This document shows positions 8,108 through 64,000 of a stretch of 64,000 bases of DNA, piece after piece. Location of the stretch: NCBI GenBank assembly GCA_002269645.1, contig NIVC01000903.1, forward strand, positions 334,459 through 398,458. The letters are read 5' to 3'. How positions within the stretch are numbered: position 1 is the first letter of the stretch; every line of letters begins with the position of its first letter. A model generated the notes under the pieces. It saw nothing but the letters and a program-made list of their open reading frames with translations, was not told the origin of the DNA and made no database searches. The position numbers and the translations under genes are program-made. This DNA comes from Macrostomum lignano. Taxonomy: Eukaryota.

Positions 8108-8469
8108 TGGGATGTTAAATAAAACTCGACTGCTCTCTTTAATCCAACAGATTTGTCTTGAAAACTATTTTTCACAGAATTTTTACAAGCATGGCAGTCA
8201 TACCCGTTCCGCTGATCCCTGAGCATGCACACGGATTATTAATATTGTTAGCTTCTGAATGCTCAAAAGCGGATTTTTTAGAATCCGGTTACTTACAGCA
8301 ATCAATGCTTTCTGTACAAATTTCGGCAATCTTAAAACCGCCTGGCTACTTTTAGTAGTCAAGAATCTAAATTTATCGATAAATTGTATCAATAAGCTAT
8401 ATATTAATAATAGATGACACTATTGACTTCCAAATAGATCATTTCAGAATGAGAAGACACACTTGTGAA

Positions 8470-11734: not shown

Positions 11735-12830
11735 TATGAGATCCTCAACAATCCATGAGATTCTCAACACCATCCATGAGATTCTCAACACCATCCATGA
11801 GATTCTCAACACAATCCATGAGATTCTCAACACCGTCCATGAGATTCTCAACACCATCCATGAGATTCTCAACACCATCCATGAGATTCTCAACACCATC
11901 CATGAGATTCTCAACACCATCCATGAGATTCTCAACACCATCCATGAGATTCTCAACACCATCATGAGATTCTCAACACCATCCATGAGATTCTCAACAC
12001 CATCCATGAGATTCTCAACACCATCCATGAGATTGTCAACACAATCCATGAGATTCTCAACACCATCCATGAGATTCTCAACACCATCCATGAGATTCTC
12101 AACACCATCCATGAGATTCTCAACACCATCCATTAGATTCTCAACCATCCATGAGATCCTCAACAATCCATGAGATTCTCAACACCATCCGTGAGACTCT
12201 CAACCATCCATGAGATTCTCAATACCATCTATGAGATACTTAATGCCATCCATGAGATTCTCAACACCATCCATGAGATTCTGAACAATCCATGAGATTC
12301 TCAACACCATCATGAGATTCTCAATACCGTCCATGAGATTCTCAACACCATCATGAGATTCTCAATACCATCCATGAGATTCTCAACACAATCCATGAGA
12401 TTCTCAACACAATCCATGAGATCCTCAACAATCCATGAGATTCTCAACAATCCATGAGATTCTCAACACCATCCATGAGATTTTCAACACAATCCATGAG
12501 ATTCTCAACTCCATCCATGAGATTCTCAACACCATCCATGAGATTCTCAATACCATCCATGCGATTCTCAACACCATCCATGAGATTCTCAACAATCCAT
12601 GAGATTCTCAACAATCCATGAGATTCTCAACACCATCCATGAGATACTTAACACCATCCATGAGATTCTCAACAATCCATGAGATTCTCAATACCATCCA
12701 TGAAATACTTAACACCATCCGTGAGATTCTCAACAATCCAGATTCTCAACACCATCCATGAGATCCTCAACACCATCCATGAGATTCTCAACACCATCCA
12801 TGAGATTCTCAACACCATCCATGAGATTCT
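11735..12830. repeat. 21-bp minisatellite (CCATCCATGAGATTCTCAACA)n
   Basis: Tandem unit with indel variants. Confidence 0.95.
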
Positions 12831-13318
12831 CAAATATTATAAGAGTCTCATGAGTATGATCCACAGATGACGGACTTCTCAAACGCCAAGCTAAACTTCA
12901 TCATTGGCCCTAAACTGGTCTATTGAGTCTCTAAAGTGGCTTTATTCTCTTGATCATCCCCCAGTCTCTCAGTCCCTGATGAGGCCTTCCAGCCTCCGTT
13001 ATCCACTGTTGCATCTAGCGATAAGACAGAGAGAAAGGGGCCAGGGTGTGGTGTGCTCAACTTTAGAAGAAACTGCCCAGCGGAAATCAGTGAGCCGAAG
13101 CAGCAACAGCAGCATTCCCATCCCCAGAACTGGACACTTAATTTCGAATTCCGAGATCCGCTCTGAGATACGCTGAGACCAACAGCCTCCACTCCCCCTG
13201 GCTCGTCTAGGCATTGTGCAGCTCAACTCAGCGTTCTCTTGCCGTCAGTTTCTTTTTGCTGAGGAATCTCGACACAAATTTAAACAACGCTTAAAACAGT
13301 TTCTTGTAAACTCAACTA

Positions 13319-29100: not shown

Positions 29101-32100
29101 CTTCTGTCTGTGTATTCTTCCCCTTCTGTCTGTGTATTCTTCCCCTTCTGTCTGTGTATTCTTCCCATCCTGTCTGCGTATTTTTCCCATCCTGTCCGTC
29201 TATCCGTTCTATCCCTTCTCCCATTGTATTGATATTCCATCTCTTCAATATCAAGCCGAGACACAATAGGCTGTCACGTGGCCAAAGCAGGCAGGCACTC
29301 ATGAAGGCCAGCAAGAAAAATAAGAAGCAGAAGAAGAAGCAGAAAAGTTTTCTTTCCCAATTTTATTGAGCGAAATGGTGGGAGGAGCAGCTCAAGCAAA
29401 TCTGCTCTGCTCCTAAAAGCTCTCAAGGCTTGTTATGCGCTTTTTAGCTCTTATATTAAGCATAAGACTCATTAGGAATTTATATACTAAAAACAATTTT
29501 TCTCAGCCTATGCAACTTCTCTGCACTTCAGTTCCGCGTACTACACTTACCTGGGCACATAGCAATGTAATCTGCAGGCTATATAGCTCAATGTAACTTG
29601 TTTCATGCAAAACATTTGAATGGGTTGCGCAAATTTTAGACCAACTGAAGACAGAAAAACGCCCCCAGGCTCTGTTCTGCATATCCCAGAATCCCTCGCC
29701 TCATCCTATTGTTTTTCCTTCTAATTTCCTTTTTTGGCTCTAAATTAGGAAAAGTCAGTCGAGCATTGAAATTGCCCGTGTGTGTGTGTTGTTTACTCCT
29801 CAATGGTTTTTGCCTAAATATTTTCTCAAGCAGAAATTTTCAGCGCCTGCAAAAGCAAAATTGAATATAGAATAAGAAATTACTGCTCATATCTGTCTGC
29901 ATGCACTGTGTGTGGCCTGCGTGCTTCTATACTCAAAATCCTTAGAAGACTTAAGGCTCAGCAGGGTGCATGAAGTCACAGCCAGCGCAGCACTGCCTGC
30001 AGCATAGGCACAAAAAGAGCAACTGCCGAGTAACAGAAGAAAAGAAAAAAGTGTCAGTTTTGCGTTTCTTCATCTTTTCTCTGTCTATAATATCTCAACC
30101 GTTGGCTAATACTTGAGCACGTCCCTCTGACAGAGAATAAGATACAGATTTCAGAGACTGTCTGCTATATGCATCGCGATGGGACACTATATGGCACTGT
30201 CAGCTGCAAAGTATATAGCAAGCGTGATACCTGTGCCTTAAGAGTGTATATAGAGATATATATAAAGTCTGACGGGCCATTTCAGGTGTGAAGAGAACTG
30301 CCTGTCTGCCATGCAGTAACTTAGAAAGTGAAGCTCAGCAGGGGGTTTCGGTGGCTGCTGCCAGGCCACTTAGAGGGTCCCTGGTCGGGTCTCAGCAGTT
30401 TCTATATATCTACTCGTATCTTCGTATCCCTTCTCACCCACTCTCACTCGCCTATATGATCGTCTCATCCAGCCATCTGTCCATGAATGCATCCAAGCGG
30501 CTATGCTCTACGCACTTGCATTTATTTATCAACGACAAGTTCTCCTAGCAGAAGTGACGTCACATCTCCGGGGGAGGGGGGGACGGGGTTCCTGCTCGAC
30601 AACATGGCGGCAACAGCTCACTCTCAAGTCTAATTTTAATCTTGCGATCTCCTCCCGTGCGTAAACTGACAGACTGGGCGGTGGTGAGTGCAAATTTGCA
30701 TAAATTTAGCATCGAACAGCATCGATATTCGAGTAGCCATGGTCGGGGGACCATTTTTTGTTGTTTGGGCGGGTTTAAAAAATAAATTTAGATTACTAAC
30801 AGATCGGAACGGATTTCCATCAGATGAGGGGCGGATTTCCATCAGATAAGGGGCGGATTTCCATCAGATGAGGGGCGGATTTCCATCAAATGAGGGGCGG
30901 ATTTCCATCAGATGAGGGGCGGATTTCCATCAGATGAGGGGCGGATTTCCATCAGATGAAGGGCGGATTTCCATCAGATGAGGGGCGGATTTCTATCAAA
31001 TGAGGGGCGGATTTCCATCAGATGAAGGGCGGATTTCCATCAAATGAGGGGCGGATTTCCATCAGATAAGTTCCATCAGATGAGGGGCGGATTTCCATCA
31101 GATGAAGGGCGGATTTCCATCAGATGAGGGGCGGATTCCCACCATTTCAGAAGCGGTTTTGCATTAGATGAAGGGCGGATTTTCATTAGATGAGGGGCGG
31201 ATTTCCATTAAATAAGGGGCGGATTTCGGGAAGTTAAATTATGGAGTCAATGCAGACTGAATCCAAAGCTCACCAGTCCTGCCTCCTCGGCCAGTTTTGT
31301 GCGCCATCTGCTGGTGATGAAGCTGCCCAGCCGCTGCCTGCTGCTGCTGCTGCTGCTGCAGGAAGTCCTGCCTGAGCATGGGGCCGCACCTGCTGCTGAC
31401 GTAGTCCTGCTTGCAGACAAATTTGTTCTCGTCGAACACGACCAGCTCCTCGCCCGTGATGAGCTGCTTTCGGCACACCATGCAGGTGAAGCAGCCCAGG
31501 TGGAACACTTTGTTGCGCGCCTTTCGAACCAGATCGTTCGGCGAGATGCCCTCCGAGCAACCGGCGCATTTTGTGCCAAATCGCCTGCGAGGGAAGGCGA
31601 GGAATGAGGGGGGGGGGGGGGTAAATGAGACTGGGCGTGTGCTCCTGGCTTTGATGAGTTGAAGTTTTGTAAAAGATAAGATAGGGATAAACTGAACGAA
31701 AAGAGTTTAAAAGAAGAAGAGAGGAAGCGAGAATTAGGGAGAGAAGAGAGGCAGAGAGGAGAGAGTAGATTAGAAGTAGAGACTCGAAAGGTATAGAAGT
31801 AGAGAGGTGAGGTAGAGAGGTGAGGTAGAGAGGTGAGGTAGAGAAGTGAGGTAGAGAGGTGAGGTAGAGAAGTGAGGTAGAGAGGTAGAGAGGTAGAGGT
31901 AGAGGTAGAGAGAGGTAGAGAGAGGTAGAGAGGTAGAGAGGTAGAAGTAGAGAGGTAGAGAGAGGTAGAGAGGTAGAGAGGTAGAGAGGTAGAGGTAGAA
32001 GTAGAGAGGTAGAGAGGTAGAGGTAGAGAGGTAGAGAGGAGAGAGGAGGGAGGAGAGAGGCAAGCAAAGGAAAGATAAAGAGAACACAGGTAGACAGAAG

Positions 32101-32443
32101 AGACTCGAGACAGACGGACAGACAGAAGTAGAGAGAGGCAGAGAGAGGGTAGAGGGAGATGCAGTTGCAGACATATACAAGAAAGCACAAGGGGAGAATG
32201 CCCAAGCCTCGAGTGTTGGAGTGGAAAGCAGAAGAACTGAAACACGGGTCTCAAACGCAAGCTCAGTGCTGACCTGAAGAAGTCGGCTCGGCAGTAGAGG
32301 CGGCCATCTCTGCTGAAGCATTTGTCGCTGAGCTCCTGACCGCAGTCGCTGCACTGCAGGCAGGCCGCGTGCCAGGACTGGTCCAGCACGCTCAGCAGGT
32401 ACTGGTCGAATATCTGCCGGTTGCACCCGGCACAGATCACCAT
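20135..32443 (-). CDS. lhx1/5: LIM-homeobox transcription factor, Lhx1/5 (Lim1/lin-11) class. Exons 32443-32274, 31584-31274, 25840-25077, 23967-23799, 22664-22531, and 20397 (or 20386)-20135
   Basis: LIM1 [28 protein letters not shown]...; LIM2 RFGTKCAGC...[16 protein letters not shown]; homeodomain [47 protein letters not shown]|[18 protein letters not shown], characteristic of Lhx1/5. Splice phases 2,1,0,1 are consistent. The last junction is ambiguous. Confidence 0.95.
22690..23765. repeat. 24-bp intronic minisatellite (GTCTATGGTAGCTATTCCCATCAT)n in Lhx1/5 intron 4
   Basis: Tandem unit visible; it generates the 409-414-aa pseudo-ORFs. Confidence 0.97.
27880..28330. repeat. Degenerate tandem repeat rich in TCTAGA/CTACCTAGAT
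   Basis: Recurrent CTAGATGTCTACCTAGATCTCT-like units. Confidence 0.6.
29060..29210. repeat. 22-bp pyrimidine-rich minisatellite
   Basis: Unit GTGTATTCTTCCCCTTCTGTCT. Confidence 0.9.
30805..31232. repeat. 22-bp intronic minisatellite (CAGATGAGGGGCGGATTTCCAT)n with a GC-box in most units
   Basis: Period 22 (30821, 30843); begins ~40 nt after the Lhx1/5 exon 2 donor. Confidence 0.95.
31790..32065. repeat. Purine-rich simple repeat (AGAGGTAG variants) in Lhx1/5 intron 1
   Basis: Direct observation. Confidence 0.9.
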
Positions 32444-34757: not shown

Positions 34758-37540
34758 AATACGCGTCTCAGCATGCAAGGTTAGAGCAGGGTGCGTCAGA
34801 TGGCGCGTCGCAGTCAGTAGCCCTCTTTCCGGATCACGTGACCCACCAGTTGAAGTCGCCGCCGGCGTAGGATAATGGACGCGCGCTGCAGCTTGGCCCG
34901 ATCGTATAAGGTCTCGGTCCCGATTCTCTCATTAGCTCGAAAGGCCGCACGGAGCAGCCCTGAGTGCGCCGAGTCTAGCTGCCCCTCCAGCGTAGCCGTC
35001 AGCGTCCACGTCTCGGCGTTGTAGAGCAGGACGGTTTCGACCACCGCCTTCCACAGCCGAGCAGGAGGACGGCTCGGATCGAAGGAAAGGCCGCCCAGGC
35101 AAGTCCTCTGCGCCGCCGGAGGTCTTCTCCACGTGAGGCACCAGACCGCCGAAGTAGGTGAACCGCTGGCAGCATGCGAGCCTGGTCGTCTGCCCGTCTG
35201 CGCCGCGGCACGTCAGGTCTGCTGGGATGTCGGCCGGCACAGTCGGTACCTCAGTCTTCAGCATGTTGACAACCAGACCGACGCTCGATGCCACTTCGAC
35301 CAGCCTGTCGATCTGGCGCTGGGCGCCTTCAATGGACGAGGACAGGAGGGCGAGGTCCTCGGTATCGCCAAGCACGCCCAGGCGCTTTTCGCCGTGGCGC
35401 CGACCGATGCGTCTGGGCAGCGGGAAGCCGTCGACAGTCGAGGGGAGTGGGGTCCGAAGCACCCAGTCCAGCAGCAGCACGAAGAGGAACGGCGCTAGCG
35501 TGTCGCCCAGCAGAACTCCTGATGAAGTGTCTAACAGGCCGTCTGCCGTCACCACAGCAGTTTGAGTATCGCAATAAAGCGCCATGACAGCGTCGATTAG
35601 CTGCTGGGGTATCCGGTAGGCTCGAAGGACAAAGGGAAGCGCGGCCCTCAACACCGAGTCAAACGCCTTTCGAAAGTCAACGAAGACAATGATCAGCGTA
35701 GACTGGCGGATGCGCGCCTCCTCGATGACACGGCGGAGTGCGAGGATCCGTGTCACTGTACCGCGTTGCGGCTGGAATCCGTTCTGATCGTACCGCAGGT
35801 ACGGGTCCAGCACCGACTGCAGACGATCGAGCAGCAGCCGGTTGAAGAGCTTTGCGGTGCAGGACATTAGCGAGATCCCGCGGTGGTCTTCTTTCCGCGT
35901 TGTCCCTGCCTTCTTCGGGATCGGCACGATGTGCGCGACGGTCCACTCGGTGGGCGCAGGAGCGCCGGCGAGCACGCGGTTCATGACGCCTGTGACCTGG
36001 GAGGCCACACAGCGGAGCCGCAGCGCTTCGACCGGGACTTCGTCGGGGTCGAGCACCTTGCCGCCAAGTGATTTTCGAGCGAACAGCACAACGTCCTCCG
36101 TGGTGAGTCCTTCTCAGCTGGGAGCGGCGTGTCCAGTGGGAGCGCAAAGCTGGCGTGCAGCGGCGAGCGGGCGCGTTTACAACAACACAACAACAAAAAA
36201 TACATTGTCAGCCAGTCAAGCTTGGGACAATGTCACATGGCACATTTCAAGGCCTGGGCGCGAACGTCGGTCGCACCGCTGGCAGTGTCCGGGGCGCCGG
36301 CATCAGCCAGCGGGCAGCGCGTTCACGATGCTGGCGAAGAAGTCGCGCAATTCATTCTTGCGCTCCTCCGGGGTGTCGCCGGCCAGGTTCAGCGCCACGC
36401 GCTTTTGCGCCCCGTCAGAGTCCGGACGGCCGTCCACACTGCGCGGCTCTTCGAGTCGGGGCCGGCTGAAGTGATGGTCCGGACGGCGTCGTCGACAGCA
36501 ACCTGCTGCCGCTTGTCTAGAAGGTGCTCAAACGCGTCTTCAGCGTCGCCCGTAGGCCGCCGATTTCTGCTGAGTCGCTCGATGTTGAGCCGCGCTTGCC
36601 TGATGGTCGGGTCGCTCTGTTAGACTGGCAGCGATTTCTGCGCTGGCCGCATCAGCGAGACCGTCTGCTCCGCAGCGGCTCTAACGGCGGTGCTGATGTC
36701 GGAATACTCCGCCTCGCGCTGGTCTCCAAGCGCGCCGACGAAGGCGCCCGCGAACTGACGCTTGACGCGGGTGTCCAACAGAGCGCGATAGTAGCGCCGT
36801 GGCCGCTGCTTTGGCGGTCGGTAGAGCTGGTCGCGGAGCCGCAAGTCGCAGAGCAGGAGTCGGTGGTCTGACCGGAGAGCCAGCGGAGCCATGGCGGCGC
36901 TCGCGAGTGCGAACCAGCGCATGATCGAGTTGCGCCAGTCTCCTCGTGGCGTTCCGCCCGCGTGCGTCCCGCCGCCTTCTCTTGCAGCCAGCAAAGGTGA
37001 CCAGGCGGGCAGGGGCTTGCGGAACTGGGTGTTCGCGGACACCAGGGTCACAGCCGGTCAAGCAGGTCCTCCAGTGCATCGGTGTTGGCGCTCTCGCGTC
37101 CCGCAACAAAGGGCGAGCGCTCTGACCTTTGCGGGACTGCGTTCAGGTCTCCGAGCACCGCCAGCGTGTTGCGGTTTGGCACCTCTTCCAGCTGCCCAGC
37201 CAGGAAGTCGAAGAAGGCGCGAGCCTCCTCGGGGTGAGCAGCGGTAGGTGCATACGCGCAGAACAGCCGAATGCAGTAGGCGCGCAGTCGCAGGTCGACC
37301 CGCATCAGTCGCAGGAACAGCGAAGTGCAATGCACGCGCTGCTGAAGGCGCGGTCCAATCAGTACGCCGACACCGCCCCGGCCGCGGTCGTCTGCCGACG
37401 TGTACAGGAGGCTCCAGCCGGCTCCGAGGTCCTCAGAGTGGAGCCCCGGCTAAGCCACGATAGAAACCCCCTGCAGCAAGATGAGGTCCAGCTGGACGAG
37501 AATGATGCGACGCCAGGGGGCCTTCAGAGTACGGCTGTTC
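34710..37540 (-). mobile_element. Decayed RTE-type non-LTR retrotransposon (APE endonuclease + RT) with a (TTG)n 3' tail
   Basis: APE fragments RLGTMNSRTL, FCAYAPT, LGDLNA; RT HRGISLMSCTAKLFN, QNGF, DFRKAFDS; C-terminal RRRLQLVGHVIR. Fragments lie in several frames, and QG and YADD are mutated (LLGDTLAP, GDTEDL). Confidence 0.9.
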
Positions 37541-38949: not shown

Positions 38950-41900
38950 ATGCGGACTCTGATGCTGCCGATGCTGCTACTGCTGGCTGCCTGCTGGGTG
39001 CTGCCAGCGTCTGGCTCCATCGACGGTCGCAAAGCGGCAGCCGGCCTGCTGGCCAACGCCAGCATCTCTGGGATTCTGTCGGGCATCCGCGACGGCCGGT
39101 TCACCTGCGAGGATTTGATCAGTGAGCAGCTTCGCCGAATCGATGCCTACAATGCCAGCCTGGCCGCTTTCATCTCCGTCGATAAGGAGGCTGCGATGGC
39201 GGCGGCGAAGGCCAAGGACAGCCAGGGCGGGCTGAGCGGAGCGCTGCACTGCGTGCCAGTGGCCGTGAAGGACAACGCGGATGTCAAAGGGGTGCCGACC
39301 ACCAGCGGAGCGCCCGCCCTGCGGACTATGACAGCGGCTAGCGACAGCGCCGTGGTGGCTCGCATCAGGGCGGCTGGCGGTGAGCCGGGATGAGATATGG
39401 ATGGACTTCATGGGGGCATGAGAGGGAGACTTCATAGGGGCATGAGAGGGAGACTGCATGGGGGCATGAGAGGGAGACTGCATGGGGGTGTGAGAGGGAG
39501 ACTGAGAGGGAGACTGCATGGGGGCATGAGAGGGAGACTGCATGGGGGTGTGAGAGGGAGACTGCATGGGGGCATGAGAGGGAGACTGCATGAAGGCATG
39601 AGAGGGAGACTGCATGGGGGTGTGAGAGGGAGACTGCATGAAAGCATGAGAGGGAGACTGCATGGGGGCATGAGAGGGAGACTGAGAGGGAGACTGCATG
39701 GGGAATGAGAACGAGACTGGGAGCATGTGAGGAGATGCTAGCATGAGAGGGAAAAGTACTGCAAGGATCAGAGAGGAAGAACACAAGCACAAACCCGGGT
39801 CCAACAGGCATAGTGATAGGCAAGGCCAACATGGCGGAGATGTCGGACTCCGGCACCAGCTCAGTCAGCACCCTTGGCGGAGTCTGCGCCAACCCGTGGG
39901 ACAAGCGGCGAAGCTGCCTCGGCAGTTCTGGCGGGTCAGGCGCCGCGGTGGCCGCCGGCCTGGCCGTCCTTGGCGTCGGCACGGACACTGAGGGCTCCGT
40001 GATCGGGCCCTGTACAGCATCCGGTCTCGTCTGCATCAGGCCGACTCAGAACGCGCAATTCGAAGCCATGCGGGAGGGCGTCTACCCGGCCTTCCAGCGA
40101 CAGGACCTGGTCGGCTTGATGGCTCGCAGCAGGGGCGACTACCTCACTGCTCACGATGCCGTCTACGGTATGTTGTGCGGCAGTGCCCTCCGTCACTGTC
40201 CCGCACACCCTCCGTCACTGTCCCGCACACCCTCCGTCACTGTCCCGCACACCCTCCGTCACTGTCCCGCACACCCTCCGTCACTGTCCCGCACACCCTC
40301 CGTCACTGTCCCGCACACCCTCCGTCACTGTCCCGCACACCCTCCGTCACTGTCCCGCACACCCTCCGTCACTGTCCCGCACACCCTCCGTCACTGTCCC
40401 GCACACCCTCCGTCACTGTCCCGCACACCCTCCGTCACTGTCCCGCACACCCTCCGTCACTGTCCCGCACACCCTCCGTCACTGTCCCGCACACCCTCCG
40501 TCACTGTCCCGCACACCCTCCGTCACTGTCCCGCACACCCTCCGTCACTGTCCCGCACACCCTCCGTCACTGTCCCGCACACCCTCCGTCACTGTCCCGC
40601 ACACCCTCCGTCACTGTCCCGCACACTCTCCGTCACTGTCCCGCACACTCTCCGTCACTGTCCCGCACACCCTCCGTCACTGTCCCGCACACCCTCCGTC
40701 ACTGTCCCGCACACCGTCCGTCAAATAACTTATCAGACGCGCTCACATCCCGGCAAAATGATTCAAACCGAAACAGGCAGCAACTTCAGCCAGACAATAT
40801 CCGGGGTAACTCAGCTCAACAAGATGACAATCCGATTCCTGGATAATTTCTACGAAAGTTTCCCAATCTCAGCAACCGAGTCCTACTCACCCGACCCGGA
40901 AATGGTCCGCCTGCACAACCGCGCCGCCGAACGCTTGGCCGAACTGGGCGCCACAATTCAGCGCTACAGGACGAATGGCACCGATCTGGGCGCCAAGCTC
41001 GGTGTGATATTCCAGGCCACCAGCACCAAGCCGCGGTGCAGCAACAGCTGCATGAAGAAGAGCCTCAACGATTACTTAAGGCGGTGAGTCCAATTATTTT
41101 TAAATTCTGGAGTCCTTGAGTTCCATCTTGCCGATGCTGAATATCCCGGAGTCCTTGAGTTCCATCTTGCCGATGCTGAATATCCCGGAGTCCTTGAGTT
41201 CCATCTTGCCGATGCTGAATATCCCGGAGTCCTTGAGTTCCATCTTGCCGATGCTGAATATCCCAGAGTCCTTGAGTTCCATCTTGCCGATGCTGAATAT
41301 CCCGGAGTCCTTGAGTTCCATCATGCCGATGCTGAATATCCCGGAGTCCTTGAGTTCCATCTTGCCGATGCTGAATATCCCGGAGTCCTTGAGTTCCATC
41401 TTGCCGATGCTGAATATCCCGGAGTCCTTGAGTTCCATCATGCCGATGCTGAATATCCCGGAGTACTTTGCCTCCCTCCCGCAATCTTACCACCAGTGTC
41501 TCAAACCCACACGCCATCCTCGTACAAAAATCCGTCCAGCTACTCGGCAACCGGGCCGTTTCGAAACGCCAGCGACCTGCAGCGCGTGTTCTCGGGCTTC
41601 CCGATCTCCTACCAGGAGAAGCTGAACTTCACCATCAGCCAGCCGGACGATCAAGTGTGCGGCGCGGCCGCCTGCGACCCCTACAACATCGGCCGGTCGA
41701 ACGTCACTGACATCATGCGCGAGCTGCTGGGCGACGCTGATGTCTTGGCGGTGCCGTTCACCGCCAAGCTGCCGCAGTTGAACTCCGTGCAGCCGGGTCT
41801 CGCCGACCAGATCTCGCCGGCCTTGAACCCGTACACAGGCTGGCCCAGCCTGGCCCTGCCTGTGGGATTCTCCGCCTCCGACGGGCAGGACCAGCCGCAG

Positions 41901-44680: not shown

Positions 44681-46430
44681 TTACTGCGACTGGATCAGCT
44701 TTCTCTTCACCTTCTGCCTGACCCGGCGCCGCTCCGCCGCGCTAACTCCGCGCGCCCCTAATCGGCGCAGCACAACGCCGGCTGCCGCGGCCATCCGCGG
44801 GGCCACAGCGCGCAGGCCGGCAGTGTCCAGGCCGGCGATAGCGGCGGCCAAGCCCGGGTCGGCTCTGGCGGCAATAGCGTCGCCAATGAGCAGCCGGCGA
44901 GTCCTGTGGAAGAACAGGCGCTCAGCGGCGGCGTACAGTCGGGCGTCAAGGCTCGTGGCGGACTCGGCGATGGCCAGGTCGGCCCGGCTGGTGTTCAGCT
45001 GGCTGGCCACGGTTTCATCGTGCTGCCAGAACAGCCGGTTGAACAGCAGGCCGAGGCCGCGGGTGAGCTGGTACTGGTTGAGCACCTGTAGGTGACCGGT
45101 GGGAGCGAGTGAGCTTAAAATTCTTAGACAATCGAAATATTGAACATTATACAGTTCACCGAGTTTACAACCTACTAGCTCAAAGTTCACCGAGTTTACA
45201 ATCTACTAGCTCAGAGTTCACCGAGTTCACAATCTACTAGCTCAAAGTTCACAATCTACTAGCTCAGAGTTCACCGAGTTCACAATCTACTAGTTCAAAG
45301 TTCACCGAGTTCACAATCTACTAGCTCAAAGTTCACAATCTACTAGCTCAGAGTTCACCGAGTTAACAATCTACTAGCTCAGAGTTCACCGAGTTCACAA
45401 TCTACTAGCTCAAAGTTCACCGAGTTCACAATCTACTAGCTCAAAGTTCACAATCTACTAGCTCAGAGTTCACCGAGTTAACAATCTACTAGCCTCAAAG
45501 TTCACCGAGTTCACAATCTACTAGCTCAAAGTTCATTGAGTTCACAATCTACTAGCTCAAAGTTCACCGAGTTCACAATCTACTAACTCAAAGTTCACAA
45601 TCTACTAACTTAAAAACTACAACCATAGCTACCTGGTACTCGGTGAGGCCAACAAAAATCATTCGTCTCAGATTGGCCAGCGCCCCGGCCAGCATCTCCT
45701 TGCCGCCCAGGCACTCCCGGCCGGTCAGGTTGGCCAGCATGCGGCTCTGCCTATTAATAGCCGGATTGGTGGCGCAGCCGGCAAACTCGGCCAGCCCAAC
45801 GCCGTGCCAGTCGTCGCCACGGTAGCACAGCTCCGGCTGCGGGTCCATCGGTTTGCCGTCGCAAAACCGACGCGCCGCCTCCCAGGTAGCGCCGCGCCTT
45901 ACGTGACGCCACTCGGAAAAGAATCGGTCAACAGGCCGGCGCAGCACCGTCATGTAGTGCAGCCGGACGCCCGGGCGGAACCGATGCCAATTGGGCACGC
46001 AAGCCTGCAAAGCGGCCAGGCTGGCGTGGAGTCCGCAGCGCCAGCCGACGCTGCCGCGGCTGAACAGCCAATCGGTGTCGGCCGAATTCAAGCACAGGCA
46101 GCGCTTCCGACCGCGCCGACAGCGGCAGGGCAGGCCGCGCACGCCGGCCCGGACGAACTGACGATTAAGCGAGGAGCCGCCGGTTTTCTGAATGTGCACC
46201 AGCACCAGGGCGCTGCCGCCCTGCATTAGATCCGGCGGCGGCCGCGGCGGCCAGTCGAGATCGTCAGGGTCGGTGTCGACGTTGGCAGACGAGAGCCAGC
46301 GGCGATTGAAGAGGCCGGCAACGAGGTGACGGCTGCCACCATGGCGCCGAGACAGCAGGAGGAAGCAGCAGACGAGCAGGACGACAGCAAAGGCCGCCAA
46401 GCATAGCCGGTTGCGGCTGATGGCAGTCAT
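44681..46430 (-). CDS. hs6st: Heparan-sulfate 6-O-sulfotransferase-like type II membrane protein. Exons 46430-45633, 45085-44681
   Basis: N-terminal TM; PAPS 5'-site LVHIQKTGGS; WLFSRGSVGWRCGLHA; 3'-site YMTVLRRPVDRFFSEWRHVRRGATW; NPAINRQSRML; FVGLTEYQ|; phase-0 intron. Confidence 0.93.
45165..45612. repeat. 31-bp intronic minisatellite with shorter variants (HS6ST intron)
   Basis: Unit TCAAAGTTCACCGAGTTCACAATCTACTAGC. Confidence 0.95.
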
Positions 46431-54215: not shown

Positions 54216-56232
54216 CAATATAGAAATGTATAGTATTTAGACTGCATATAGTCTAAATTAATAAGTAAACTACCTTATTAATGAATAGTTTTAATAGTAA
54301 TAACTAAAATTATATATAATATAATTGATTGATGCAAAGCAACTAAAGTCTTCGAGCCATAGCAATAGCAATAATATCTTTGATTAAGATCTGTCGCAAG
54401 GGATGTTTCCTTCTTAATAATATCCCACTGCTGTTACCAAAAGCTGTCCCAGGGCTCTTATTTATTCTTTGTTTAGCCTTACTTGCTGCCACCAAAGTTA
54501 TTACAGGGCTAAACTTTCTGTCTTTCTACCTAATGTACTTTTACATAAGTGTACTATTATTACTGGTAGTGTCTACTTATATTAATTGGTAGCATGTACT
54601 TCTGTACTTTTATTAGTAGCTTATATACTTTTATTGTACTTTCTGGTCTGAGCTGTCTTTTAGGCACTGTCTATCCTATCCCTATACTCCTCTAAAGATA
54701 TTATTATCAGTCCTGGGCGTTCCCGGGATCAGAGGGTCACAGCACACTTTGCTGGGTATTCTGCCCTGAGGCAGGTTTCTCAGACTCTAAGCCTGGATTT
54801 TTCTACCCTGTGGTAGGAAGTCTGCCTTCTAAAGGTGGGTTACTAGACTCCTAAGTCTAGGATTTCTCATTCTCTGAGAATGGACTGAACTCCCAATCTT
54901 GGGGCAACTCCTATGTCACTATCCACTACTTGAAATAAGTAACACGAGTGATCACGAGCCCAAGGCTGATTTAAAGCTTGGTCAATGTTCGAAACAATGG
55001 TACAAGACCAACAAACAAGAAAAGGTTCACAAGGTTGTTTATTTTTGCTCCCAGCTGACTCTTATTTATAGTAAAATTTTCCTAGTATTTAAAACAAAGT
55101 ATTAATACATAGAATATTCAGAATATTTTGCATATAAGAAATATTTTTAATATTCGCATAGTATAACAACAGTAGTACGTTTTTGGAAATGCAACTTTTT
55201 CTAAGAAATTGTTATAAAACTGGAGGCCTATTATAGATCCTTAATTTCTTTTGTATATCTAGTGTTGGACATGCACTAAAATGCAGAAGCCGATGTAGAA
55301 GTAGATGTAGAATATTTAATCTAAATTGCATAGATAGCTATTAGATAAGCTCACAAGCAATGATTTATAACCCTAAAAATATTGAAAACCACACCTTTAT
55401 ATTTTTTGACTACAAGTATGGCAAAATCATATTACAAAAATCCTACAAGTATGAATTCTAAATGGTTCAAACCGTTGAAAATTAGAACAGCTAGACTATT
55501 GGCAAACTTTGAATTAAAAAAATGGAGAAGTTCAAAATAGATTCAAAGAAAAATTTAACTTGCTGTAACTGCGTAAATACTAACTAATGCAATTTTAATG
55601 GCTGAGCTGTAAAATGAAGAACTTACTATAAATACTACCCCTTGCAATTTGAATGCTGTAAAATAAAGGACTTCACCTATCAATCTGATGAATATGTAAT
55701 ATTTATATACGATAAAATGCTGACAGAAAAGAGATATTTGGCAAAAATGAACCAAACTAAAGCTTTAACCAGCTTTAAAATTTAGAACACAAGTCAATTT
55801 GGCTTCAAAGTGGTGTAGCAGCTAAGATAAAGAGAAAACATAGAACAGTTTCAATTGACCAGCATATAAAAGTACTTTGCTGAAAAATGCAGAAATTCTG
55901 CAACAGACAGGGGTCGTAGAACGAATCGCACAATGTTAAACAATTGGTGGTAAATAAGTAGCTTAAGAAAAAGCAAACAGTTTCAAGGTATCGTATTCAA
56001 AGCCATTAAAGCATAGTAGTATGCCAAACAAAGTGCTAATAAAATGACCATAGAAAATCAGCACAATAGTCTTAAAGCACACTGAATGCCCTAAATGTCA
56101 TCCCAGCAATTTGAATGTCTGAGCTGTAAAATGAAGGACTTGCTATAAATGCCAATACCAACCCTGCTATTTAGAATGCCTGCTGTAAAATGAAGAACAG
56201 AACCAACAATATCAAGGGCAATTCGTAGTCTT

Positions 56233-58421
56233 TCACTTTGACTGCCGACTGCCGCCGGCTGTTTCGGCCTGGCGTTTCTTCGCTGCAGCCGACTGTCGAC
56301 TCTTTGCTGGATTCGCTTGATCGGCGGCTGTTTCAGCGGGACGTTCCTTCGCTGCAGCCGCCTGTCGACTCTTCGTTGGGTTTGCTTTCGCTTGATCGAC
56401 GGCTGTTTCAGCCTTGCGTTTCTTTGCTGCAGCCGCCTGTCGAGTCTTCGCTGGGTTTGCTTTCGCTTGATCGACGGCTGTTTCAGCCTTGCGTTTCTTT
56501 GCTGCAGCCGCCTGTCGACTCTTCGCTGGGTTCGCTTTCGCTTGATCAACGGCTGTTTCAGCCTTGCGTTTCTTTGCTGCAGCCGCCTGTCGACTCTTCG
56601 CTGGATTCACTGTGTTTGACTTGTGAGATGCTGCCGCTGGACCTCGGACAAAAGCAAGGAATGCCCCCGGTCCAATGATGTCCGGTTGCTGCATGTTGGC
56701 CAGACCAGAAATGATGCCACCAATCGCAAATCGTGCAGCCATGCTCATTGACTTCATTGTAGCTTGGTACAACTGGCGTGCAACATTGGGTTTGTGGCAC
56801 AGTCGGATCGATACTGCCTTTTGTTGATTTTCATCTAGGTACATTGCGGAGTACGTTTCAATGAATTTCCGATAGGCTGTATTAGTCACATGCTCGATTT
56901 TCGAATTCTTTGCTCGCTCCCTTGTCCATACCCTCGCAAAGCCACCCGTGCCAAGTGGGAAGAGCCTGTCAGTTGGTGAGGCCGTCTTTGCTCTCTCTTG
57001 AATGTAATTCGCGAGAATTTCGGCAACGCTGTCGACCGCAACTCTACAGGCGCCATACATGTTGGACGTCTTGTGCTCTTTAACGAAAAATTCGCTCTTC
57101 TGATCAGTCAGCCACTCAAGGCCTTCCTTAATGGTTGCATTAGTCGGAATGTCCGGCCTACTGGCGTTGCCATTCGAGAAGCACATTGAAGTGGTGATGC
57201 CAACAATGACGTCGTTGGACAAAATGTTTGATTCTGCAGCTGATTCTGCTCTAGTAATTAAGGAATGCACATGCGAGTACAAACTTTCGACTTCTTCTGG
57301 CTTCAGTAATTCCTTATCGAGAACGTTCCGCAATCTGGCATCATTTGGCCGACGAACCTTAAGTCCATACGCCTTGGTTAGGCGCTTTAGACGCTCTTCG
57401 AACTCCAGAAGGTAGCATTTCAGGCCTAGATTCCGTAGTTCAACAAAACGGCGTGCTCGGAAAAACGAAACTAAATGCGTTAACGCGTTGATGTATGATT
57501 GATCGGCTGATTTATTTCGCTTCGAGTCCTCCTCAACGAACGCGCTAACTTTATCACGAAACTCTTCAGTCAAAATCGAAAGAAGGTCCGTCAGCCCACA
57601 AGCTTTAGCTAATCGAGACAGAGCATCAGTGTTCTTCCGAATCGACGATGCCTTAAGTCCGCCTCCTTCCCACTTTGGTAGCCACTTGGCCAAGTCTGAG
57701 AGCTCGACCTCCAGCAAAGTCGCCTCCTTTTTGGCATCAATGGACTTTTTAAGCGCATCAAATTTTTCCTGGGCTTTCTTGGCAGCAGCTTCTGCAGGCT
57801 TGTAGTAATGAAACCGCACACGATGGGCAGTCATTGAGCGCTTCTCAAACAGAACATCACAATCTGGGCACTTCACCTTTCTGGAAGAGTCATCTTCAAC
57901 CTCTTGCTGATTAAATACTTTGATCTCTGCAACCAGATTGTCTATATTCTTCGAGCCAAGAATATCTTTGTGGCTTTTGTGTAGATGTTGACGGATCCGG
58001 GAATGGAAAATTCCATGTTGTTGTCCCTCGGATTCCGATGGCTTCTTGAACGGGCAAATATAATTCACACCTCGCTGCTTCGATGAATTTTCCTTACCGG
58101 AAAAGGCTGCATTAGAAGAACCAGCATCAGCGGCATCGGCATCAAGATCAACAGCGGCATTGGCATCAAGATTGACAACGGCAACATGACAACCAGCGGC
58201 GAGAATGGCATTTAAGTCTTCCTCGGAAATAGGGACCAGATGGTAATTGCCGTCCTGAAGAGTTCCATTTAGATGTTCAGGCACAACGAACTCTTGCTGC
58301 TGCTGCTGCTCAGGTGGCAACGATGGTAGAGTTGGCGGGTTGCCAGAAACTGGGTCACTTGTCCTGCTGTCCGAGCCAACACTGGCAGGAGTTGCATTGT
58401 CCTTGGACATTTTCTTATCGC
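56233..58421 (-). CDS. Terminal exon of a C2H2-zinc-finger plus tyrosine-recombinase-like protein with C-terminal 25-aa basic repeats
   Basis: CPDC-x11-H-x4-H finger; integrase-like motifs in order ASRP, HKT, TAYRK, LCHK, ARQLY; repeats of NPAKSRQAAAAKKRKAETAVDQAKA (75-bp period); acceptor ATGCAG|GC at 58421. Confidence 0.7.
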
Positions 58422-58714
58422 CTGCATCGAGGTTAGGATGAAGGTAAGATAAAATGTAATGAACATGATAGTCAGTGACTGCTAGCTATGAAAATATTTT
58501 CTTAAATAATAAATTTACATTACAGGGTATGCTTATGAAGCAATAGGATAATATATAGGTAAAGTAACCTTCCATCAGCCATTTCTGCAATTTAACAGCC
58601 AACTGTGATTTGAAGTATCAGATCTGCAATTTAATGTCCCCTCCCTGCTGTGATTTGAGTCCTACTTAATCAGTCAACCTGCAAATATACTTTGAATTAC
58701 AAAAATGTATTTAC

Positions 58715-61700
58715 CTGGAGAAGCAGTCAATTGCTCTCTCTCTCTCTCTCTCTCTCTCTGCACCGCACGTCTCGATGTCAGCTGAGCTGCAAGAGACGGG
58801 GGCGCTAGATGCGCCCCAGCCTGCGAAGAAGGTTGATGGTGAGGCTCGCGTCAACCAGGAGTGCGTCTTGTTCGCCGGGGCGGGCCGCGAACCCACGTGG
58901 GCAGTCGAAAAGAATGTGCTGCTCGGTGTCGCGAGCTCCGCAGTCCGGGCACACGTCGGAGTCGGACAGGCCGAGTCGGAGTCTAGTGGCGGCGGCAAGG
59001 TTGCTGCAGCCGGCGCGGAGCTGGTTGACCAGGACCTCAAATTTCCTCGGCAAGGTTGGGAGTCTTGGCCATGGCGCCTTACGGCCCCAAAGCTCGAGGT
59101 CTAGATCACGTCTTTCCCGGCAGAGGTAAGCGCTGGCTGCCATGATGGGGACACCATGGTCGCTCTGATCTGCGGTCGCCAGTCTTGCCGCCCTATCTGC
59201 GCGTTCGTTCATGGGGATGCCGCAGTGAGCCGGTATCCAGGTGATGCGGATGGAGTGATCGCTACTCTGGTTCCAAATTTCGGAGACGATTCTGCTGTTG
59301 CTGCGCTGGCTCGCCATGATGTTGTAAATGGCCGCCTGGGAGTCAGTGAAGATGTCGATACATTGATGCTCTCTGGTATTCTGGATGGCAAGCAGTATGG
59401 CTTGAAGTTCCGCCTGGGTGCTGCTGCAGATGTTCCCTGCAGCGCTGGTGACGACCCGACCCCAGCATGGGGTGATGATCACCGCTGCGCTGGTGCCGTC
59501 TGATGTGCCGCCGGCGGCCGAGCCGTCAGTCCAAACGCTGACCGGGTGGGAGCCGCGCTCCTCGAGGTACCTCAGTGCAGTATCGCTGCGGAGGCTCTGG
59601 GGCTGGCTGCGGCTGCACTGCGTAGCCAAACTGAGGTCGAAGGTGATCGCTTCGTGGGCCGTCCACGGCGGCTGGAGCTGCGGAGCGGGCTCCCTGGTGG
59701 GGCCGTTGAGCAGCCCCTGTCTGTCGAGCTCTTGGCTAACGCGGCGCCAGCAACCACGGTGTTCTCGCTGGTAGTCGTGGAGGACGGTGACGATGTCCTT
59801 TGGGTCTCTCGGTGTTCTCTGGTGGCTCTCAAAGGCTCGATTCTTCAGTCGTGGTCGGGTGTCCATTTTGGCGACCTGAAGTGCTGGAGTGTCCTGCGGG
59901 AGACGTAGGATTCTTTCTCTGAGCGTCGCACTACATTGTAGCACCAGGTGGCTGAAGGGCGACAGGTTCGCCACCGCAAGCAGGTCCCGGATGTGAGTAA
60001 GTTGGAGGCACCCAGTGATGATCCGCGCACAGCTGTGCTGTTGGCGGTCGATCAGCAGCTTAGAGCTGGCTGCAGTGAAAGACCCCCAGACCCCGCACGC
60101 GTAGTCGGCAGCAGAGCGAACGGTGGCGATGTAAGCCATGCGGAGGATCTGACTGTCCGCACCGGCCGATCTGGTAGCGAGGGCAGTGAGAGGTCTTCTG
60201 CGGGCAGCCATCTTTTTACGGATCTTTGATGCATGGTGGCTGAAACTTAGGCTGTCGTCAAGAGTGAGTCCCAGGAAGGTCGGTGTTGGATCGAAGGCAA
60301 GCTTGTCGCCGTTGATCTGGAGGTTCACTCTCCGTTTGCCGTTGTTTTCATTTGCCGCTAGAGTGAAGGTGGAGTAGCAGCATTTCCCAGTGCTAATGGA
60401 GACTTTCCAATCTCGGCACCAGTCGGCCACTGCATCCAGGGCTGGTTGGAGTTCTCTGGCACAGATGTCGAGTGTGCGAGCGGTCGCCAGTAAGGCCGAG
60501 TCATCGGCGTAGAGACTGAGGCTAACCAAAGGGTTCGCCTCGGCGACTGCTTGGGCTAAATCGTTGACATAGATATTCCACAGCGTGGGCGCTAGCACAC
60601 TGCCCTGTGGCAGACCTTCGCGGAAGACTCTGTTGCGGCTCGTGGCGTTAACCCAGCGGACTGCGTTGTGACGGTCCAACAGGAAGCCGCGGATCCAGCG
60701 GATGATGCGCTTGGGGATGCCCATGCGGTGCATTTTGGCATACAGGGCCAGGCGCCAGACTCTGTCATACGCTCGGCAGAAGTCGAGGAGGCAGAGGATG
60801 CTGCGTAGCGCCGGTAGACTCTCGAGGCCGTCAAAGATGGCTTGGCAGACTCGCGCGAGCTGTTCCTCGGTGCTACGACCGCGACGAAAACCAGCTTGAG
60901 TGGGCGTGAGGCCGCCACGGCTCTCCAGATCATAATTAAGACGAGCCAGAACCATGCGCTCCGCGCACTTGGCGATGCAGCTGGTAAGTGCGACGGGGCG
61001 GTAGTTATCCGGTGATGCGGCGTCTTTCCCTTTTTTCTGGATCGGTATAATAGTGCCAATTCGCCAGCTGGTTGGTGTTTTGCCCTCCCGCCAGGTGCGG
61101 TTGATGAGGCTGAGTAAGGCTTTGTCAGCGGCCGGCGGGAGGCGTTTAAGCATCTCGTTGGAGACACCGTCGGTTCCCACAGCCTTCCCTGATTTGAGAC
61201 ATCGGATAGCGGCGCGGAGCTCGTCGATCTCGAAAGGGGCGTCCGGGCCGTCTGTTTGGGGGTCACCCATAGGCGTGGTGGCCTCGTTCGCTTCGTATCT
61301 GATGGCCGAGTCATTTTTCCGTCTGGGGACTCGGCTAACTTCGGCGTAGAGTTGGCAAAAGAGTTCGGCCTTCTCTTTGTTAGTGCGGGCGGTGCGCTCC
61401 GGCGAGTCTGGGGAGGCGGCCCTGACGATGGCAGCCGGGTCCGGAGTTTTAAAACCATCGCCTCTCAGTGCGCGGAGTAAGCCAAAAATGTCCGAGTCCT
61501 GGCTGAAATTTGCCGCTTTGTCGAACAGGAAGGCTTTTTTCTCCCTCCGGAGACAGCCTGAGGCGTTGTGGCGGGCTCTGTTTGCGGCAATAATATTTTC
61601 TGGTGTCGGTTCTTTTTCTGCGGATTGTCTCGCGGAACGTGTAGCTTTGGAGGCCTCTTCGCAGGCGTCGTTCCAGAACGGCAGGCGTCTCGTCTCTTTC

Positions 61701-64000
61701 CTGGAGCTGCGCGGGATGGCAAGTCTTGCTGCGTTCAGGATGGCTTCGGCAAGGCGTGTGGCCTCTGTGTTTAAGGTGGTGTCGTTGCTTTCGGATTCTG
61801 CCCAGGTATTTAGCGACTCCCTGAAGGCTCCCCAGTCTGCCTTCTTATAGATCCAGCATTTTTGCCCGCAGTGACGGGTCTTTCCGGTGTTAGAGGCTGG
61901 GAGGCCGAAAACGATCGGCAGGTGATCGCTTCCCCAGTCTGGTAGCGTCTTCCAGGAGTCCGTGATGGATCCGGCAATGGTGCTACTACAGATGGTCACG
62001 TCTGGGCTACTGAGGCGGCCAGTACTGGGGCAGGTGCGTGTGTGGCAGGTGGTATTGCAGATGACGAGCCCATTGCGGGCGACCCACTCGTCGACAGTCT
62101 GGCCTCTGAGATCTTCATCAATGTGGCGTTCCCAGCTTCCGTGTGCATTGTAGTCGCCTCCGAGGATGACTCTACCAGTAGTTGGGAGATTGGTGAAGCT
62201 GGGTTGCCAGGTGTTATCGGGACGTTGGCAGCTGGATGGTGGTGCATAGATAGATGCTATCACGATCGGCTGCTGTCCTTTGAGGCGGATGCGGCAGGTG
62301 GCAACGTCCAGGAGGTCGTGTTCTCTATCGACTTTGAGTCTGTCGTACTGGACGTCATCGCGGACGAGCACCATAGTACCTCCCCGTCCTGTAATTTTTT
62401 TGTTGGTTTTTGGGATAGTGGACTGGGCTGGCGGTGGCGTGCTGGTGGTTTCTCGTCCGGATGCACTGGTTTGAACAGATTGGTTGTCTGCGCCATGCCA
62501 TGGTGTGAAACGGACGCTGCAGGCGGTACGGCCGCTGCGACATCCGGCGCACCAGTTTTCGCGGAGTCCTGGGAATCTCAGCCGGCAGCGCGGGTTGGTA
62601 CGGCGTCGTGTCCCGGCGGTGCCTGTACCGTCAGTGTCGGGTGGCCGATTTGGGTGAGCAGGTGTCACGACAGCGCGGTCATCGGGGCCGGCGTTATGCA
62701 CTCCGACTTCCCTGGAGGCCACCACGTATCCCCGCGGCGGGTTATAATCTTCTTCTTTCTTAAGCTTGGTTTCCTGAAGGAGTATAGCGGCGGGGCGCAG
62801 GGAGGCCAGCCTGTGGGCCAGCTTCGTATTACGGCTTTTGATGCCATTGCAGTTAAACTGCACGAGGAGCTCTTGGACCGGCTCGGCTTTGCGCGACGCT
62901 GCTCTCCTGTGTCTCCTGTTGCCGCCGCGGAGTCGCATGACGGATAGAAGGTTTTCGGAGTTCGACGCGTTCTCTTGGTCTTCTTCGCAGGCTCGGTGGT
63001 GGTACGGTCCGTTAGTTAAGAACAGGGGCACCTCTTGAAGGTCGGCCGTAGGCCCCCCAGTCAATTGCTGCTGTGGCTGCTGCTGCTCAGGTGGCAACGA
63101 TGGTAGAGTTGGCGGGTTGCCAGAAACTGGGTCACTTGTCCTGCTGTCCGAGCCAACACTGGCAGGAGTTGCATTGTCCTTGGACATTTTCTTATGGCCT
63201 GCATCGAGGTTAGGATGAAGGTAAGATAAAATGTAATGAACATGATAGTCAGTGACTGCTAGCTATGAAAATATTTTCCTAAATAATAAATTTACATTAC
63301 AGGGTATGCTTATGAAGCAATAGGATAATATATAGGTAAAGTAACCTTCCATCAGCCATTTCTGCAATTTAACAGCCAACTGTGATTTGAAGTATCAGAT
63401 CTGCAATTTAATGTCCCCTCCCTGCTGTGATTTGAGTCCTACTTAATCAGTCAACCTGCAAATATACTTTGAATTACAAAAAATGTATTTACCTGGAGAA
63501 GCAGTCAATTGCTGCTGTGGCTGCTGCTGCTCAGGTGGCAACGATGGTAGAGTTGGTGGGTTGCCAGAAACTGGGTCACTTGTCCTGCTGTCCGAGCCAA
63601 CACTGGCAGGAGTTGCATTGTCCTTGGACATTTTCTTATGGCCTGCATCGAGGTTAGGATGAAGGTAAGATAAAATGTAATGAACATGATAGTCAGTGAC
63701 TGCTAGCTATGAAAATATTTTCCTAAATAATAAATTTACATTACAGGGTATGCTTATGAAGCAATAGGATAATATATAGGTAAAGTAACCTTCCATCAGC
63801 CATTTCTGCAATTTAACAGCCAACTGTGATTTGAAGTATCAGATCTGCAATTTAATGTCCCCTCCCTGCTGTGATTTGAGTCCTACTTAATCAGTCAACC
63901 TGCAAATATACTTTGAATTACAAAAAAATGTATTTACCTGGAGAAGCAGTCAATTGCTGCTGCTGCTGCTGCTGCTCAGGTGGCAACGATGGTAGAGTTG
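58715..64000 (-). CDS. Tandem 150-nt phase-1/1 upstream exons of the recombinase-like gene: >64000-63938, 63642-63493, and 63198-63058 + 58723-58715 (split by the LINE)
   Basis: ~444-bp unit = exon (GHKKMSKDNATP...QQQLTASP) + ~293-nt intron, with CAG|GTAAAT donors and GATGCAG| acceptors. Confidence 0.75.
58736..63057 (-). mobile_element. Intact single-ORF non-LTR retrotransposon (APE-RT-RNase H-CCHC; I-group, Ingi-like), (GA)n tail, 12-bp TSD
   Basis: Uninterrupted ORF: LVQFNCNGI, LLQETK, GGDYNAH, SDHLP; QAGFR, GLPQGSVLAP, YADD; WTDGS, QAEL, TDS, WIPAHCG; CPDC...H...C. TSD CAGTCAATTGCT at 58724-58735 and 63058-63069. Confidence 0.95.

Follow-up and report, generated by a model that had tools for sequence, protein, structure and literature searches.

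The window analysed here is a stretch of 64,000 nucleotides of Macrostomum lignano (NCBI GenBank assembly GCA_002269645.1, contig NIVC01000903.1, positions 334,459 to 398,458 of the forward strand), and window coordinates below count from its first letter. On its minus strand, at 56233..58410, it carries a single uninterrupted reading frame of 725 amino acids (aa), called p725 here, with its stop codon at 56233-56235. Here we describe this gene, the repeated element in which it lies and a sister element family of the same organism. We consider it probable that p725 serves a Crypton-like DNA transposon of M. lignano as its recombinase and comes from a lineage outside PF00589, DUF3504 and DUF3435. 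The element family is unannotated and looks recently active.

The p725 gene and its encoded protein

Read from N- to C-terminus, p725 consists of a low-complexity N-terminus, two zinc fingers, a helical region, a motif region (R418-K447-R514-H539-Y548) and basic 25-aa repeats, all encoded on the minus strand. The first zinc finger (57970..58056; aa 119-147, YICP..H..SRIRQHLHKSH) is CHHC-like and gives weak zf-U11-48K Pfam matches in three family members. The second (57808..57870) is of the C2H2 type, with C181, C184, H196 and H201, and here the family profile matches PDB C2H2 fingers at E 0.02-0.07. A helical core-binding-like domain follows at 57430..57717 (aa 232-327), corresponding to AlphaFold2 (AF2) helices H113-208 of a modelled 491-aa segment. 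The catalytic-domain-like region (56695..57312; aa 367-572) was modelled with a predicted local distance difference test (pLDDT) score of 82 and a predicted template modelling score (pTM) of 0.80, and its Foldseek neighbours are tyrosine recombinases (YRs) and type IB topoisomerases (topo IB). It holds five candidate catalytic residues: R418 (GNASRPD; 57157..57159) as Arg I, kept in 13 of 14 family members; K447 (HKT; 57070..57072) as the beta-hairpin Lys, in 14 of 14; R514 (TNTAYRK; 56869..56871) as Arg II, in 15 of 15, with Thr511 at its minus-3 position; H539 (RLCH; 56794..56796) as His/Trp III, in 10 of 10; and Y548 (ARQLY; 56767..56769), nine residues past H539, as nucleophile, again in 10 of 10. 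The C-terminal 25-aa repeats, which are Ala/Lys-rich and contain KKRK, are encoded by 75-bp tandem repeats at 56312..56604 (3.9 copies, 94% matches).

An initial annotation, made from the sequence alone, had already described much of this layout. Its open reading frame (ORF) is indeed intact over all 725 aa, its R, K and Y codons are placed exactly, and its observation that the usual His of HxxR is replaced agrees with Thr511 three residues before R514. The C2H2 finger and the KKRK-bearing basic repeats are likewise present, with the CHHC-like finger as an addition further upstream. The helical core-binding-like region it proposed is found both in the AF2 helices and in the alignment of the model to the integron integrase IntI4 across both domains. 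It had also called the gene intron-containing. No intron lies inside 56233-58421; the introns are upstream, in a tandem exon-intron array.

The closest relative of p725 is the M. lignano hypothetical protein BOX15_Mlig028483 (g1-g3), with 98% identity over the ORF and 98.8% at the DNA level. A word-indexed homologue search gave only this M. lignano copy and, with family alignments, that copy or nothing; the family was revealed by an exhaustive phmmer search against 1.84 billion representative proteins. It consists of 21 proteins, the members being 22-39% identical to p725. Most come from Logan or ENA contigs, and the set also includes the M. lignano paralogue P0011, with the near-identical P0022 in the same cluster, and a weak tunicate match. 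One member is carried by a metagenome contig (L003) that has no informative terminal structure.

Relationship to tyrosine recombinases

Residue conservation, residue spacing and predicted fold point to p725 as a very divergent YR of the Cre/integrase type. In the family alignment all five candidate catalytic residues are among the 26 of 361 aligned columns with at least 90% conservation, being kept in 93-100% of members. Their spacing in p725 is 29/67/25/9, compared with 24/75/23/9 in XerD, 28/91/23/9 in Cre and 23/76/22/9 in lambda Int, as measured in the actual genes; the H-to-Y distance of 9 is the same in all four. Local strings are alike as well (lambda EQSKTG vs p725 EHKTS; LLGHKSDTMASQY vs RLCHKPNVARQLY). 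The bare pattern R-x20-32-K-x55-95-R-x20-27-[HW]-x8-Y arises in 322 of 3000 shuffles of p725 (11%), and the motif alone is not beyond chance. It is lifted above chance because all five residues lie in the 26 most conserved columns and because of the fold matches.

AF2 gave a pLDDT of 82.3 for the 491-aa segment, and a pLDDT of 82.3 with a pTM of 0.80 for a 223-aa domain. For the two-domain 491-aa model, the sole PDB neighbour in Foldseek that was not noise was the integron integrase 2a3v_B (VchIntI4), with a Foldseek probability of 0.84 and a template modelling (TM) score of 0.50. The alignment extends over both domains, so that the core-binding-like domain is included, and this domain also has weak, concordant SAM-like N-domain matches. 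With the domain model, the top PDB matches were the Staphylococcus aureus integrase 3nkh, the variola and vaccinia topo IB, the archaeal Xer protein 4a8e, MrpR, YopR and Brujita Int. Against BFVD the approximately 43 top matches were nearly all YRs. The best was a Musca hytrovirus tyrosine recombinase (E 0.016, Foldseek probability 1.00, TMq 0.51), with phage integrases and VLF-1 next in the list. VchIntI4, the hytrosavirus recombinase and the baculovirus/nudivirus VLF-1 are thus the best structural neighbours of the p725 models, but they differ from p725 in their biology and share just 10-14% identity with it. The AlphaFold/Foldseek comparison proposed in the initial annotation returned YRs and type IB topoisomerases as nearest neighbours, at weak E-values, and the lambda-integrase order of motifs that it had read is borne out by R-K-R-H-Y conservation across the family at canonical spacing.

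Because topoisomerases appear in these lists, p725 could also be regarded as a topo IB-like enzyme rather than a recombinase. Topo IB enzymes are marked by an R-K-R-H-Y pentad that lacks the HxxR His, as does the pentad of p725, and the PDB neighbours include the topo I of variola, vaccinia, Leishmania and human. However, the spacing matches YRs, the best alignment of the two-domain model is with an integrase, the BFVD list is made up mostly of integrases and VLF-1, and the gene lies in a mobile element with att-like ends (described below). We regard a topoisomerase-like enzyme as extremely improbable.

A number of results weigh against placing p725 among the YRs at all. The position of the HxxR His is occupied by Thr or Ser in most family members (Thr511 in p725), and the classical R-H-R-Y tetrad is consequently incomplete. 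Pfam, NCBIfam and PHROGs scans covered the whole protein plus sub-regions. None of the 21 members has a Pfam match to PF00589, DUF3504 or DUF3435 (PF11917) at E<=1; at thresholds of E<=1-10, PF00589 and its clan relatives were represented in p725 and the 21 members by no more than a non-significant match to Phage_int_SAM_1 (E 0.58), and the NCBIfam and PHROGs scans of p725 gave no YR family. PDB sequence searches with p725 and two family profiles returned no YR, just weak C2H2 matches and noise. The hhalign comparisons of the family profile with XerD and Cre were insignificant, the best local matches lying in equivalent N-terminal-domain helices. All Foldseek E-values were at least 0.016, none reached 0.001 or below, and TM scores were only 0.35-0.51. 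Finally, Y548 lies in a low-confidence loop of the AF2 model (pLDDT <50).

A further reading is that the motif is a chance product, the protein unrelated to YRs and the YR-like fold a modelling artefact of an all-helical protein. The recurrence of the relaxed motif in 11% of shuffles, the lack of a Foldseek match at E<=0.001 and a shallow multiple sequence alignment of 17-21 sequences all speak for this explanation. It does not sit well with three independent Foldseek searches, made with two different models, that each had YRs or topo IB on top, nor with a run of about 43 consecutive BFVD matches to YRs. Moreover, the five residues had been picked blind, and yet all of them fall within the 26 of 361 most conserved columns, with an H-to-Y distance of exactly 9. 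Chance similarity is in our view highly improbable. We infer that p725 is catalytic.

The p725 element and its copies

In M. lignano the gene belongs to an element of about 7.5-8.4 kb, of which three reference copies were compared: L001 (8481-16903), L004 (7692-15640) and L005 (4399-11902). Their mutual identity is 99.2-99.8%, while their flanks are unrelated to each other and to the window. They occupy different settings, namely an intron of a UQ_con gene, an intron of a TRAM_LAG1_CLN8 gene and a position upstream of Miff. The boundaries are identical and base-precise in the three copies, 5' |CCATACTTTCCAAATCGTTACAG... and 3' ...CCTGTAATGGAAAAGCC|. The 5' end reads CCATACTTTCC... and contains a cluster of TTACAG(G/A) motifs, five of them in the first 300 nt, and the inverted form occurs close to the 3' end. 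At that end, some 1.2 kb of non-coding DNA leads up to the terminal ...CCTGTAATGGAAAAGCC. The first four bases of the element, CCAT, are repeated at the start of the 3' flank in L004 and L005, that is, in two of three copies, where 1/256 would be expected at random. The bases preceding the 5' end (ggc, ggcc) mirror the last bases of the element (GCC), and both junctions therefore read G(C)CCCAT.

Apart from the subterminal TTACAG motifs, no long terminal repeats (LTRs), split direct repeats or long terminal inverted repeats (TIRs) are present. In L005 (4399-11902) p725 is the sole long ORF, the only one of at least 90 aa that is not an antisense artefact, and no reverse transcriptase (RT) is found among the ORFs. 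Two further repeats occur in the non-coding parts. A 57-nt inverted repeat in the 5' non-coding region (L001 8912-8968 / 9119-9175; 93% complementary, 150-nt spacer) may be a nested miniature inverted-repeat transposable element or a structural hairpin. In the 3' non-coding region TTCATTTTACAGC(TCAG) occurs four times (window 55589-55633 / 56106-56150 and neighbours); it has the TTACAG core of the 5' subterminal repeats and looks like a splice or trans-splice acceptor.

Some details of the ends fit less well with a recombinase-mobilised element. The right junction of L001, AAAAG[CCAT]GG, has two C's fewer than those of L004 and L005, an offset of 2 bp. The terminal inverted similarity was equalled in 185 of 2000 shuffles; a significant TIR is thus unsupported for this element. 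The comparison also covers just the three reference copies and the window copy, from a redundant assembly (PMC5730564).

This redundancy bears on the other option raised in the initial annotation, a host gene domesticated from a recombinase, whose copies would be homeologues or redundant assemblies of a duplicated karyotype. In Mlig_3_7, blocks with an identity of 95% or more add up to 180 Mb (PMC5730564). The annotation lists the gene as an expressed 'hypothetical protein' and leaves it unmasked as a repeat, and its ORF is intact even in the decayed window copy. Nevertheless, all flanks are unrelated past identical sharp boundaries, which rejects homeology or assembly redundancy as the origin of the copies, and these lie in or near different host genes. 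The window copy moreover shows a roughly neutral substitution pattern, as detailed below. Because p725 belongs to an element present in several copies, whose flanks are unrelated, whose termini are sharp and whose ends carry 4-bp direct repeats, domestication is disfavoured, and we judge it very unlikely. The same copy structure, together with p725 as sole long ORF, favours the Crypton-like transposase that the initial annotation had offered as its first option; for the copy number it had wished to see checked, the copies examined are three near-identical reference copies and the window copy.

In the reference copies the gene begins with two short 5' exons. The first is ATG-initiated (L001 9899-10093), and the second ends with (CAG)n-CAATTGACTGCTTCTCCAG. 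The first exon encodes MAHRHKTRVLVYWQDQTEGECHYVFKEDLQIIPGSENESRKIKKGAFVMYNDENGKSWIGCVGK, which by eye resembles a small Tudor-/chromo-like beta-barrel; a Pfam scan gave no match. These exons are followed by five to seven tandem units of 444 bp, the last of which runs into p725 as the large last exon. Each unit is composed of a 150-nt exon (GCCATAAGAAAATG...CTCCAG; 50 codons, frame-preserving), encoding HKKMSKDNATPASVGSDSRTSDPVSGNPPTLPSLPPEQQQPQQQLTASPG, and an intron of about 294 nt, and the copy number varies from five to seven between element copies. The arrays are located at L001 10448-13602, L004 9660-12335, L005 6366-8597 and, in the window, 63058-64000 plus 58299-58735. Two neighbouring exons have (CAG)nCAA tracts at which the unit boundaries lie, and this suggests unequal crossing-over as the origin of the array. 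An origin of the units as LINE (long interspersed nuclear element) 5' monomers or as a spliced-leader-type array was rejected, since copies free of a LINE contain them too, (CAG)nCAA tracts delimit them and the gene models splice them as exons.

In the window, the intron of the last unit (GTAAATAC...GATGCAG) occupies 58422..58714 on the minus strand. The last exon starts with 11 nt that precede its ATG (58411..58421), and 58421 is the first base after the acceptor (..gatgcag|g). In GenBank models of the reference copies this last exon is joined by splicing to 150-nt exons upstream of it (..LTASPG|HKKMSKD..). The upstream ATG and the last-unit ATG (58410) are both candidate translation starts. 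Those M. lignano models derive from genome-guided RNA-seq assembly from which transcripts overlapping annotated repeats were left out (PMC5730564). The gene is therefore transcribed and has gone unrecognised as a transposon.

The window copy is a fourth copy of the element, a decayed, LINE-interrupted and 3'-truncated relic with an open p725 ORF. Its 3' non-coding part (55454..56232, minus strand) has homology to the reference copies up to 55454, so that some 460 bp up to the reference 3' terminus are lacking; a search across the window did not find this missing end. At the other side, tandem 444-bp units (63058..64000, minus strand; 2.1 copies) are cut at the window edge, and the 5' end of the element lies beyond it. 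Relative to the three reference copies, the window ORF has 20 substituted codons, 13 nonsynonymous and 7 synonymous, a ratio that fits an immobile copy decaying neutrally with its frame still open. The substitutions are strongly directional, 19 of 20 being G:C>A:T and many at CpG.

The interrupting LINE is a non-LTR retrotransposon of 4.3 kb (58734..63057, minus strand) with APE, RT and RNase H domains identified with Pfam. It is a secondary insertion with a 10-bp target-site duplication (TSD), CAATTGACTG, whose first copy is at 63058-63067 and second at 58724-58733, an extra 5' GGGGG and a 3' (AG)13 tail, and it is missing from the three reference copies. The unit exon that it split continues as a 3' remainder at 58715..58733 on the minus strand. 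Interrupted by the LINE in the repeated 5' exons and lacking the 3' terminus, the window copy is unable to move by itself; its open ORF could act in trans.

The LINE looks full-length and has a 1460-aa ORF (58805-63187) whose first own Met is residue 84. This ORF is in frame with the ATG of the host exon, which makes a fusion protein formally possible, and for this reason the LINE ORF and the p725 ORF share 37 N-terminal residues. Common ancestry of the two ORFs, or a 5' module shared by them, was considered and rejected, as the similarity ends at the unit exon, and the LINE, which is absent from the other copies, comes with a 10-bp TSD and a tail of its own.

The remainder of the window differs in character. 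Positions 1-46000 are dense in minisatellite arrays with periods of 12-115 bp, many of them longer than 1 kb (for example 847-2223, 8464-9637, 11713-12833 and 22688-23755), and these create long spurious ORFs on both strands. Fragments of host genes are found among them: a LIM domain (31247-32443, minus strand), an amidase (39813-41087, plus strand) and a sulfotransferase (45588-46430, minus strand). A second RT fragment is located at 34932-36089 on the minus strand.

Sister family, proposed mechanism and comparison with known systems

The 1090-1109-aa M. lignano paralogues P0011 and P0022 are encoded by a sister element. Its two copies, L002 7203-16586 (NIVC01000359.1) and L009 7187-17691 (NIVC01001526.1), share about 99% identity and lie between unrelated flanks. 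The termini read CCCCTATAGGCACGTTTATGAC... and ...GTCATAAACGTGCCCC. With one CCCC shared, a circle would bring them together as GTCATAAACGTGCC-CCTATA-GGCACGTTTATGAC, a perfect 14-6-14 arrangement, and the reconstructed circle junction would read GTCATAAACGTGCCCCTATAGGCACGTTTATGAC. The score of this 14-bp terminal inverted repeat was reached in 0 of 2000 shuffles. The junction provides strong circumstantial support, drawn from DNA termini, for the view that the p725 family works on simple YR-type sites via circles. The sister element also has many subterminal GTCAT/ATGAC motifs and long tandem arrays with periods of 80 bp and about 190 bp downstream of the gene.

These ends also help to judge whether p725 might be a degenerate, YR-like zinc-finger protein with a DNA-binding or regulatory function and no catalysis, another enzyme mobilising the element and CCAT being the TSD or preference of that enzyme. 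Such a protein would account for the absence of a sequence-profile match to any YR, for the missing HxxR His and for the weak Foldseek E-values, and MrpR, YopR and SroF, which are non-catalytic YR-like regulators, are among the structural neighbours. On the other hand, R, K, R, H and Y are kept across a family just 22-39% identical to p725, whereas YR derivatives that are domesticated or inactive, DUF3504 among them, have lost the catalytic residues (PMC3212892) that this family keeps. The element has no other long ORF, independent copies show the same CCAT at both junctions, and a lox-like 14-6-14 junction occurs in the sister family. We therefore consider a non-catalytic p725 unlikely.

As a working model for the Crypton-like transposon, the zinc fingers and the helical core-binding domain would bind the element ends. 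The catalytic domain, with R418, K447, R514, H539 and the nucleophile Y548, would cleave and rejoin DNA via a 3'-phosphotyrosyl intermediate. Recombination of the CCAT-containing direct repeats at both ends would release a circle with the junction ...GGAAAAGCC-CCAT-ACTTTCC..., predicted more fully as ...GGAAAAGCC(CC)ATACTTTCC..., and this junction would then recombine with CCAT-containing targets. The circular intermediate, the target rule and the assignment of protein parts to DNA motifs are features that we infer.

The nearest known kind of element are the Cryptons (Goodwin et al. 2003; Kojima & Jurka 2011, PMC3212892), especially CryptonS and CryptonF with their 4-6-bp terminal direct repeats. 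By definition Cryptons encode only a YR, lack LTRs and TIRs and have terminal direct repeats of 4-6 bp, which are regarded as recombination substrates (PMC3212892, PMC13465315). The p725 element likewise has a putative YR as its only enzyme, no RT, no LTRs or long TIRs and short terminal direct repeats, and a circular intermediate is proposed in both cases. The CryptonS termini, TATGG, are the reverse complement of the CCATA with which the p725 element starts, a likeness taken from the text of PMC3212892 alone. Unlike animal CryptonA, p725 lacks the Pfam domain DUF3504 that is the CryptonA mark. The animal Cryptons of the 2011 survey have no terminal repeats or extra domains and come from six phyla, Platyhelminthes not among them (PMC3212892), whereas the p725 element has terminal direct repeats and its protein has two zinc fingers and basic C-terminal repeats. 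The p725 gene further differs from Cryptons in its tandemly amplified exon-intron array and in the Thr at the HxxR His position. We file the element as Crypton-like by structure and proposed mechanism; its domain content and its ends set it apart from the animal Cryptons of that survey.

Cre/loxP and Xer share with p725 the two domains (helical core-binding and catalytic) and the R...K...R...H/W-x8-Y order and spacing. The sister-family junction, 14-6-14 or 34 bp, has the same layout as the 13-8-13 of loxP, but the inverted arms of the p725 element are short and imperfect. In contrast to Cre and Xer, p725 has extra zinc fingers and low-complexity tails and is a eukaryotic, intron-bearing gene without detectable sequence similarity to either. 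The DIRS, Ngaro, PAT and VIPER elements also encode a YR in a eukaryotic mobile element; they carry RT/RNase H, split or inverted terminal repeats and PF00589-matching YRs, none of which is found in the p725 element, and the only RT near p725 belongs to the independent LINE with its own TSD. The 'Captain' YRs of Starships carry DUF3435 (PF11917), which p725 does not. It is a tentative possibility that the elements described here represent an unrecognised deep lineage of eukaryotic YR transposons, apart from CryptonA/I/F/S, DIRS-like elements and Starships, that is characterised by zinc-finger N-termini and Cre/lox-like sites and has been very recently active.

Eukaryotic YR-only transposons, i.e. 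Cryptons, are rare and poorly defined, their ends and mechanism being mostly inferred. New with respect to the 2011 survey are the host phylum and the terminal direct repeats; the zinc-finger N-termini, the basic C-terminal repeats and the amplified 5' exon array are further distinctive features. The family also exposes an annotation gap, as a putative recombinase that is invisible to Pfam and HMMER has been called a 'hypothetical protein' and left unmasked as a repeat. Near-identical copies with base-precise ends, the CCAT repeats and the 34-bp site of the sister family make excision, circle formation and target choice directly testable. If active, p725 and its site would add a new recombinase/site pair, from an animal in which transgenesis works, and, should the deep lineage hold true, a native, directly testable one in a transgenesis-ready metazoan.

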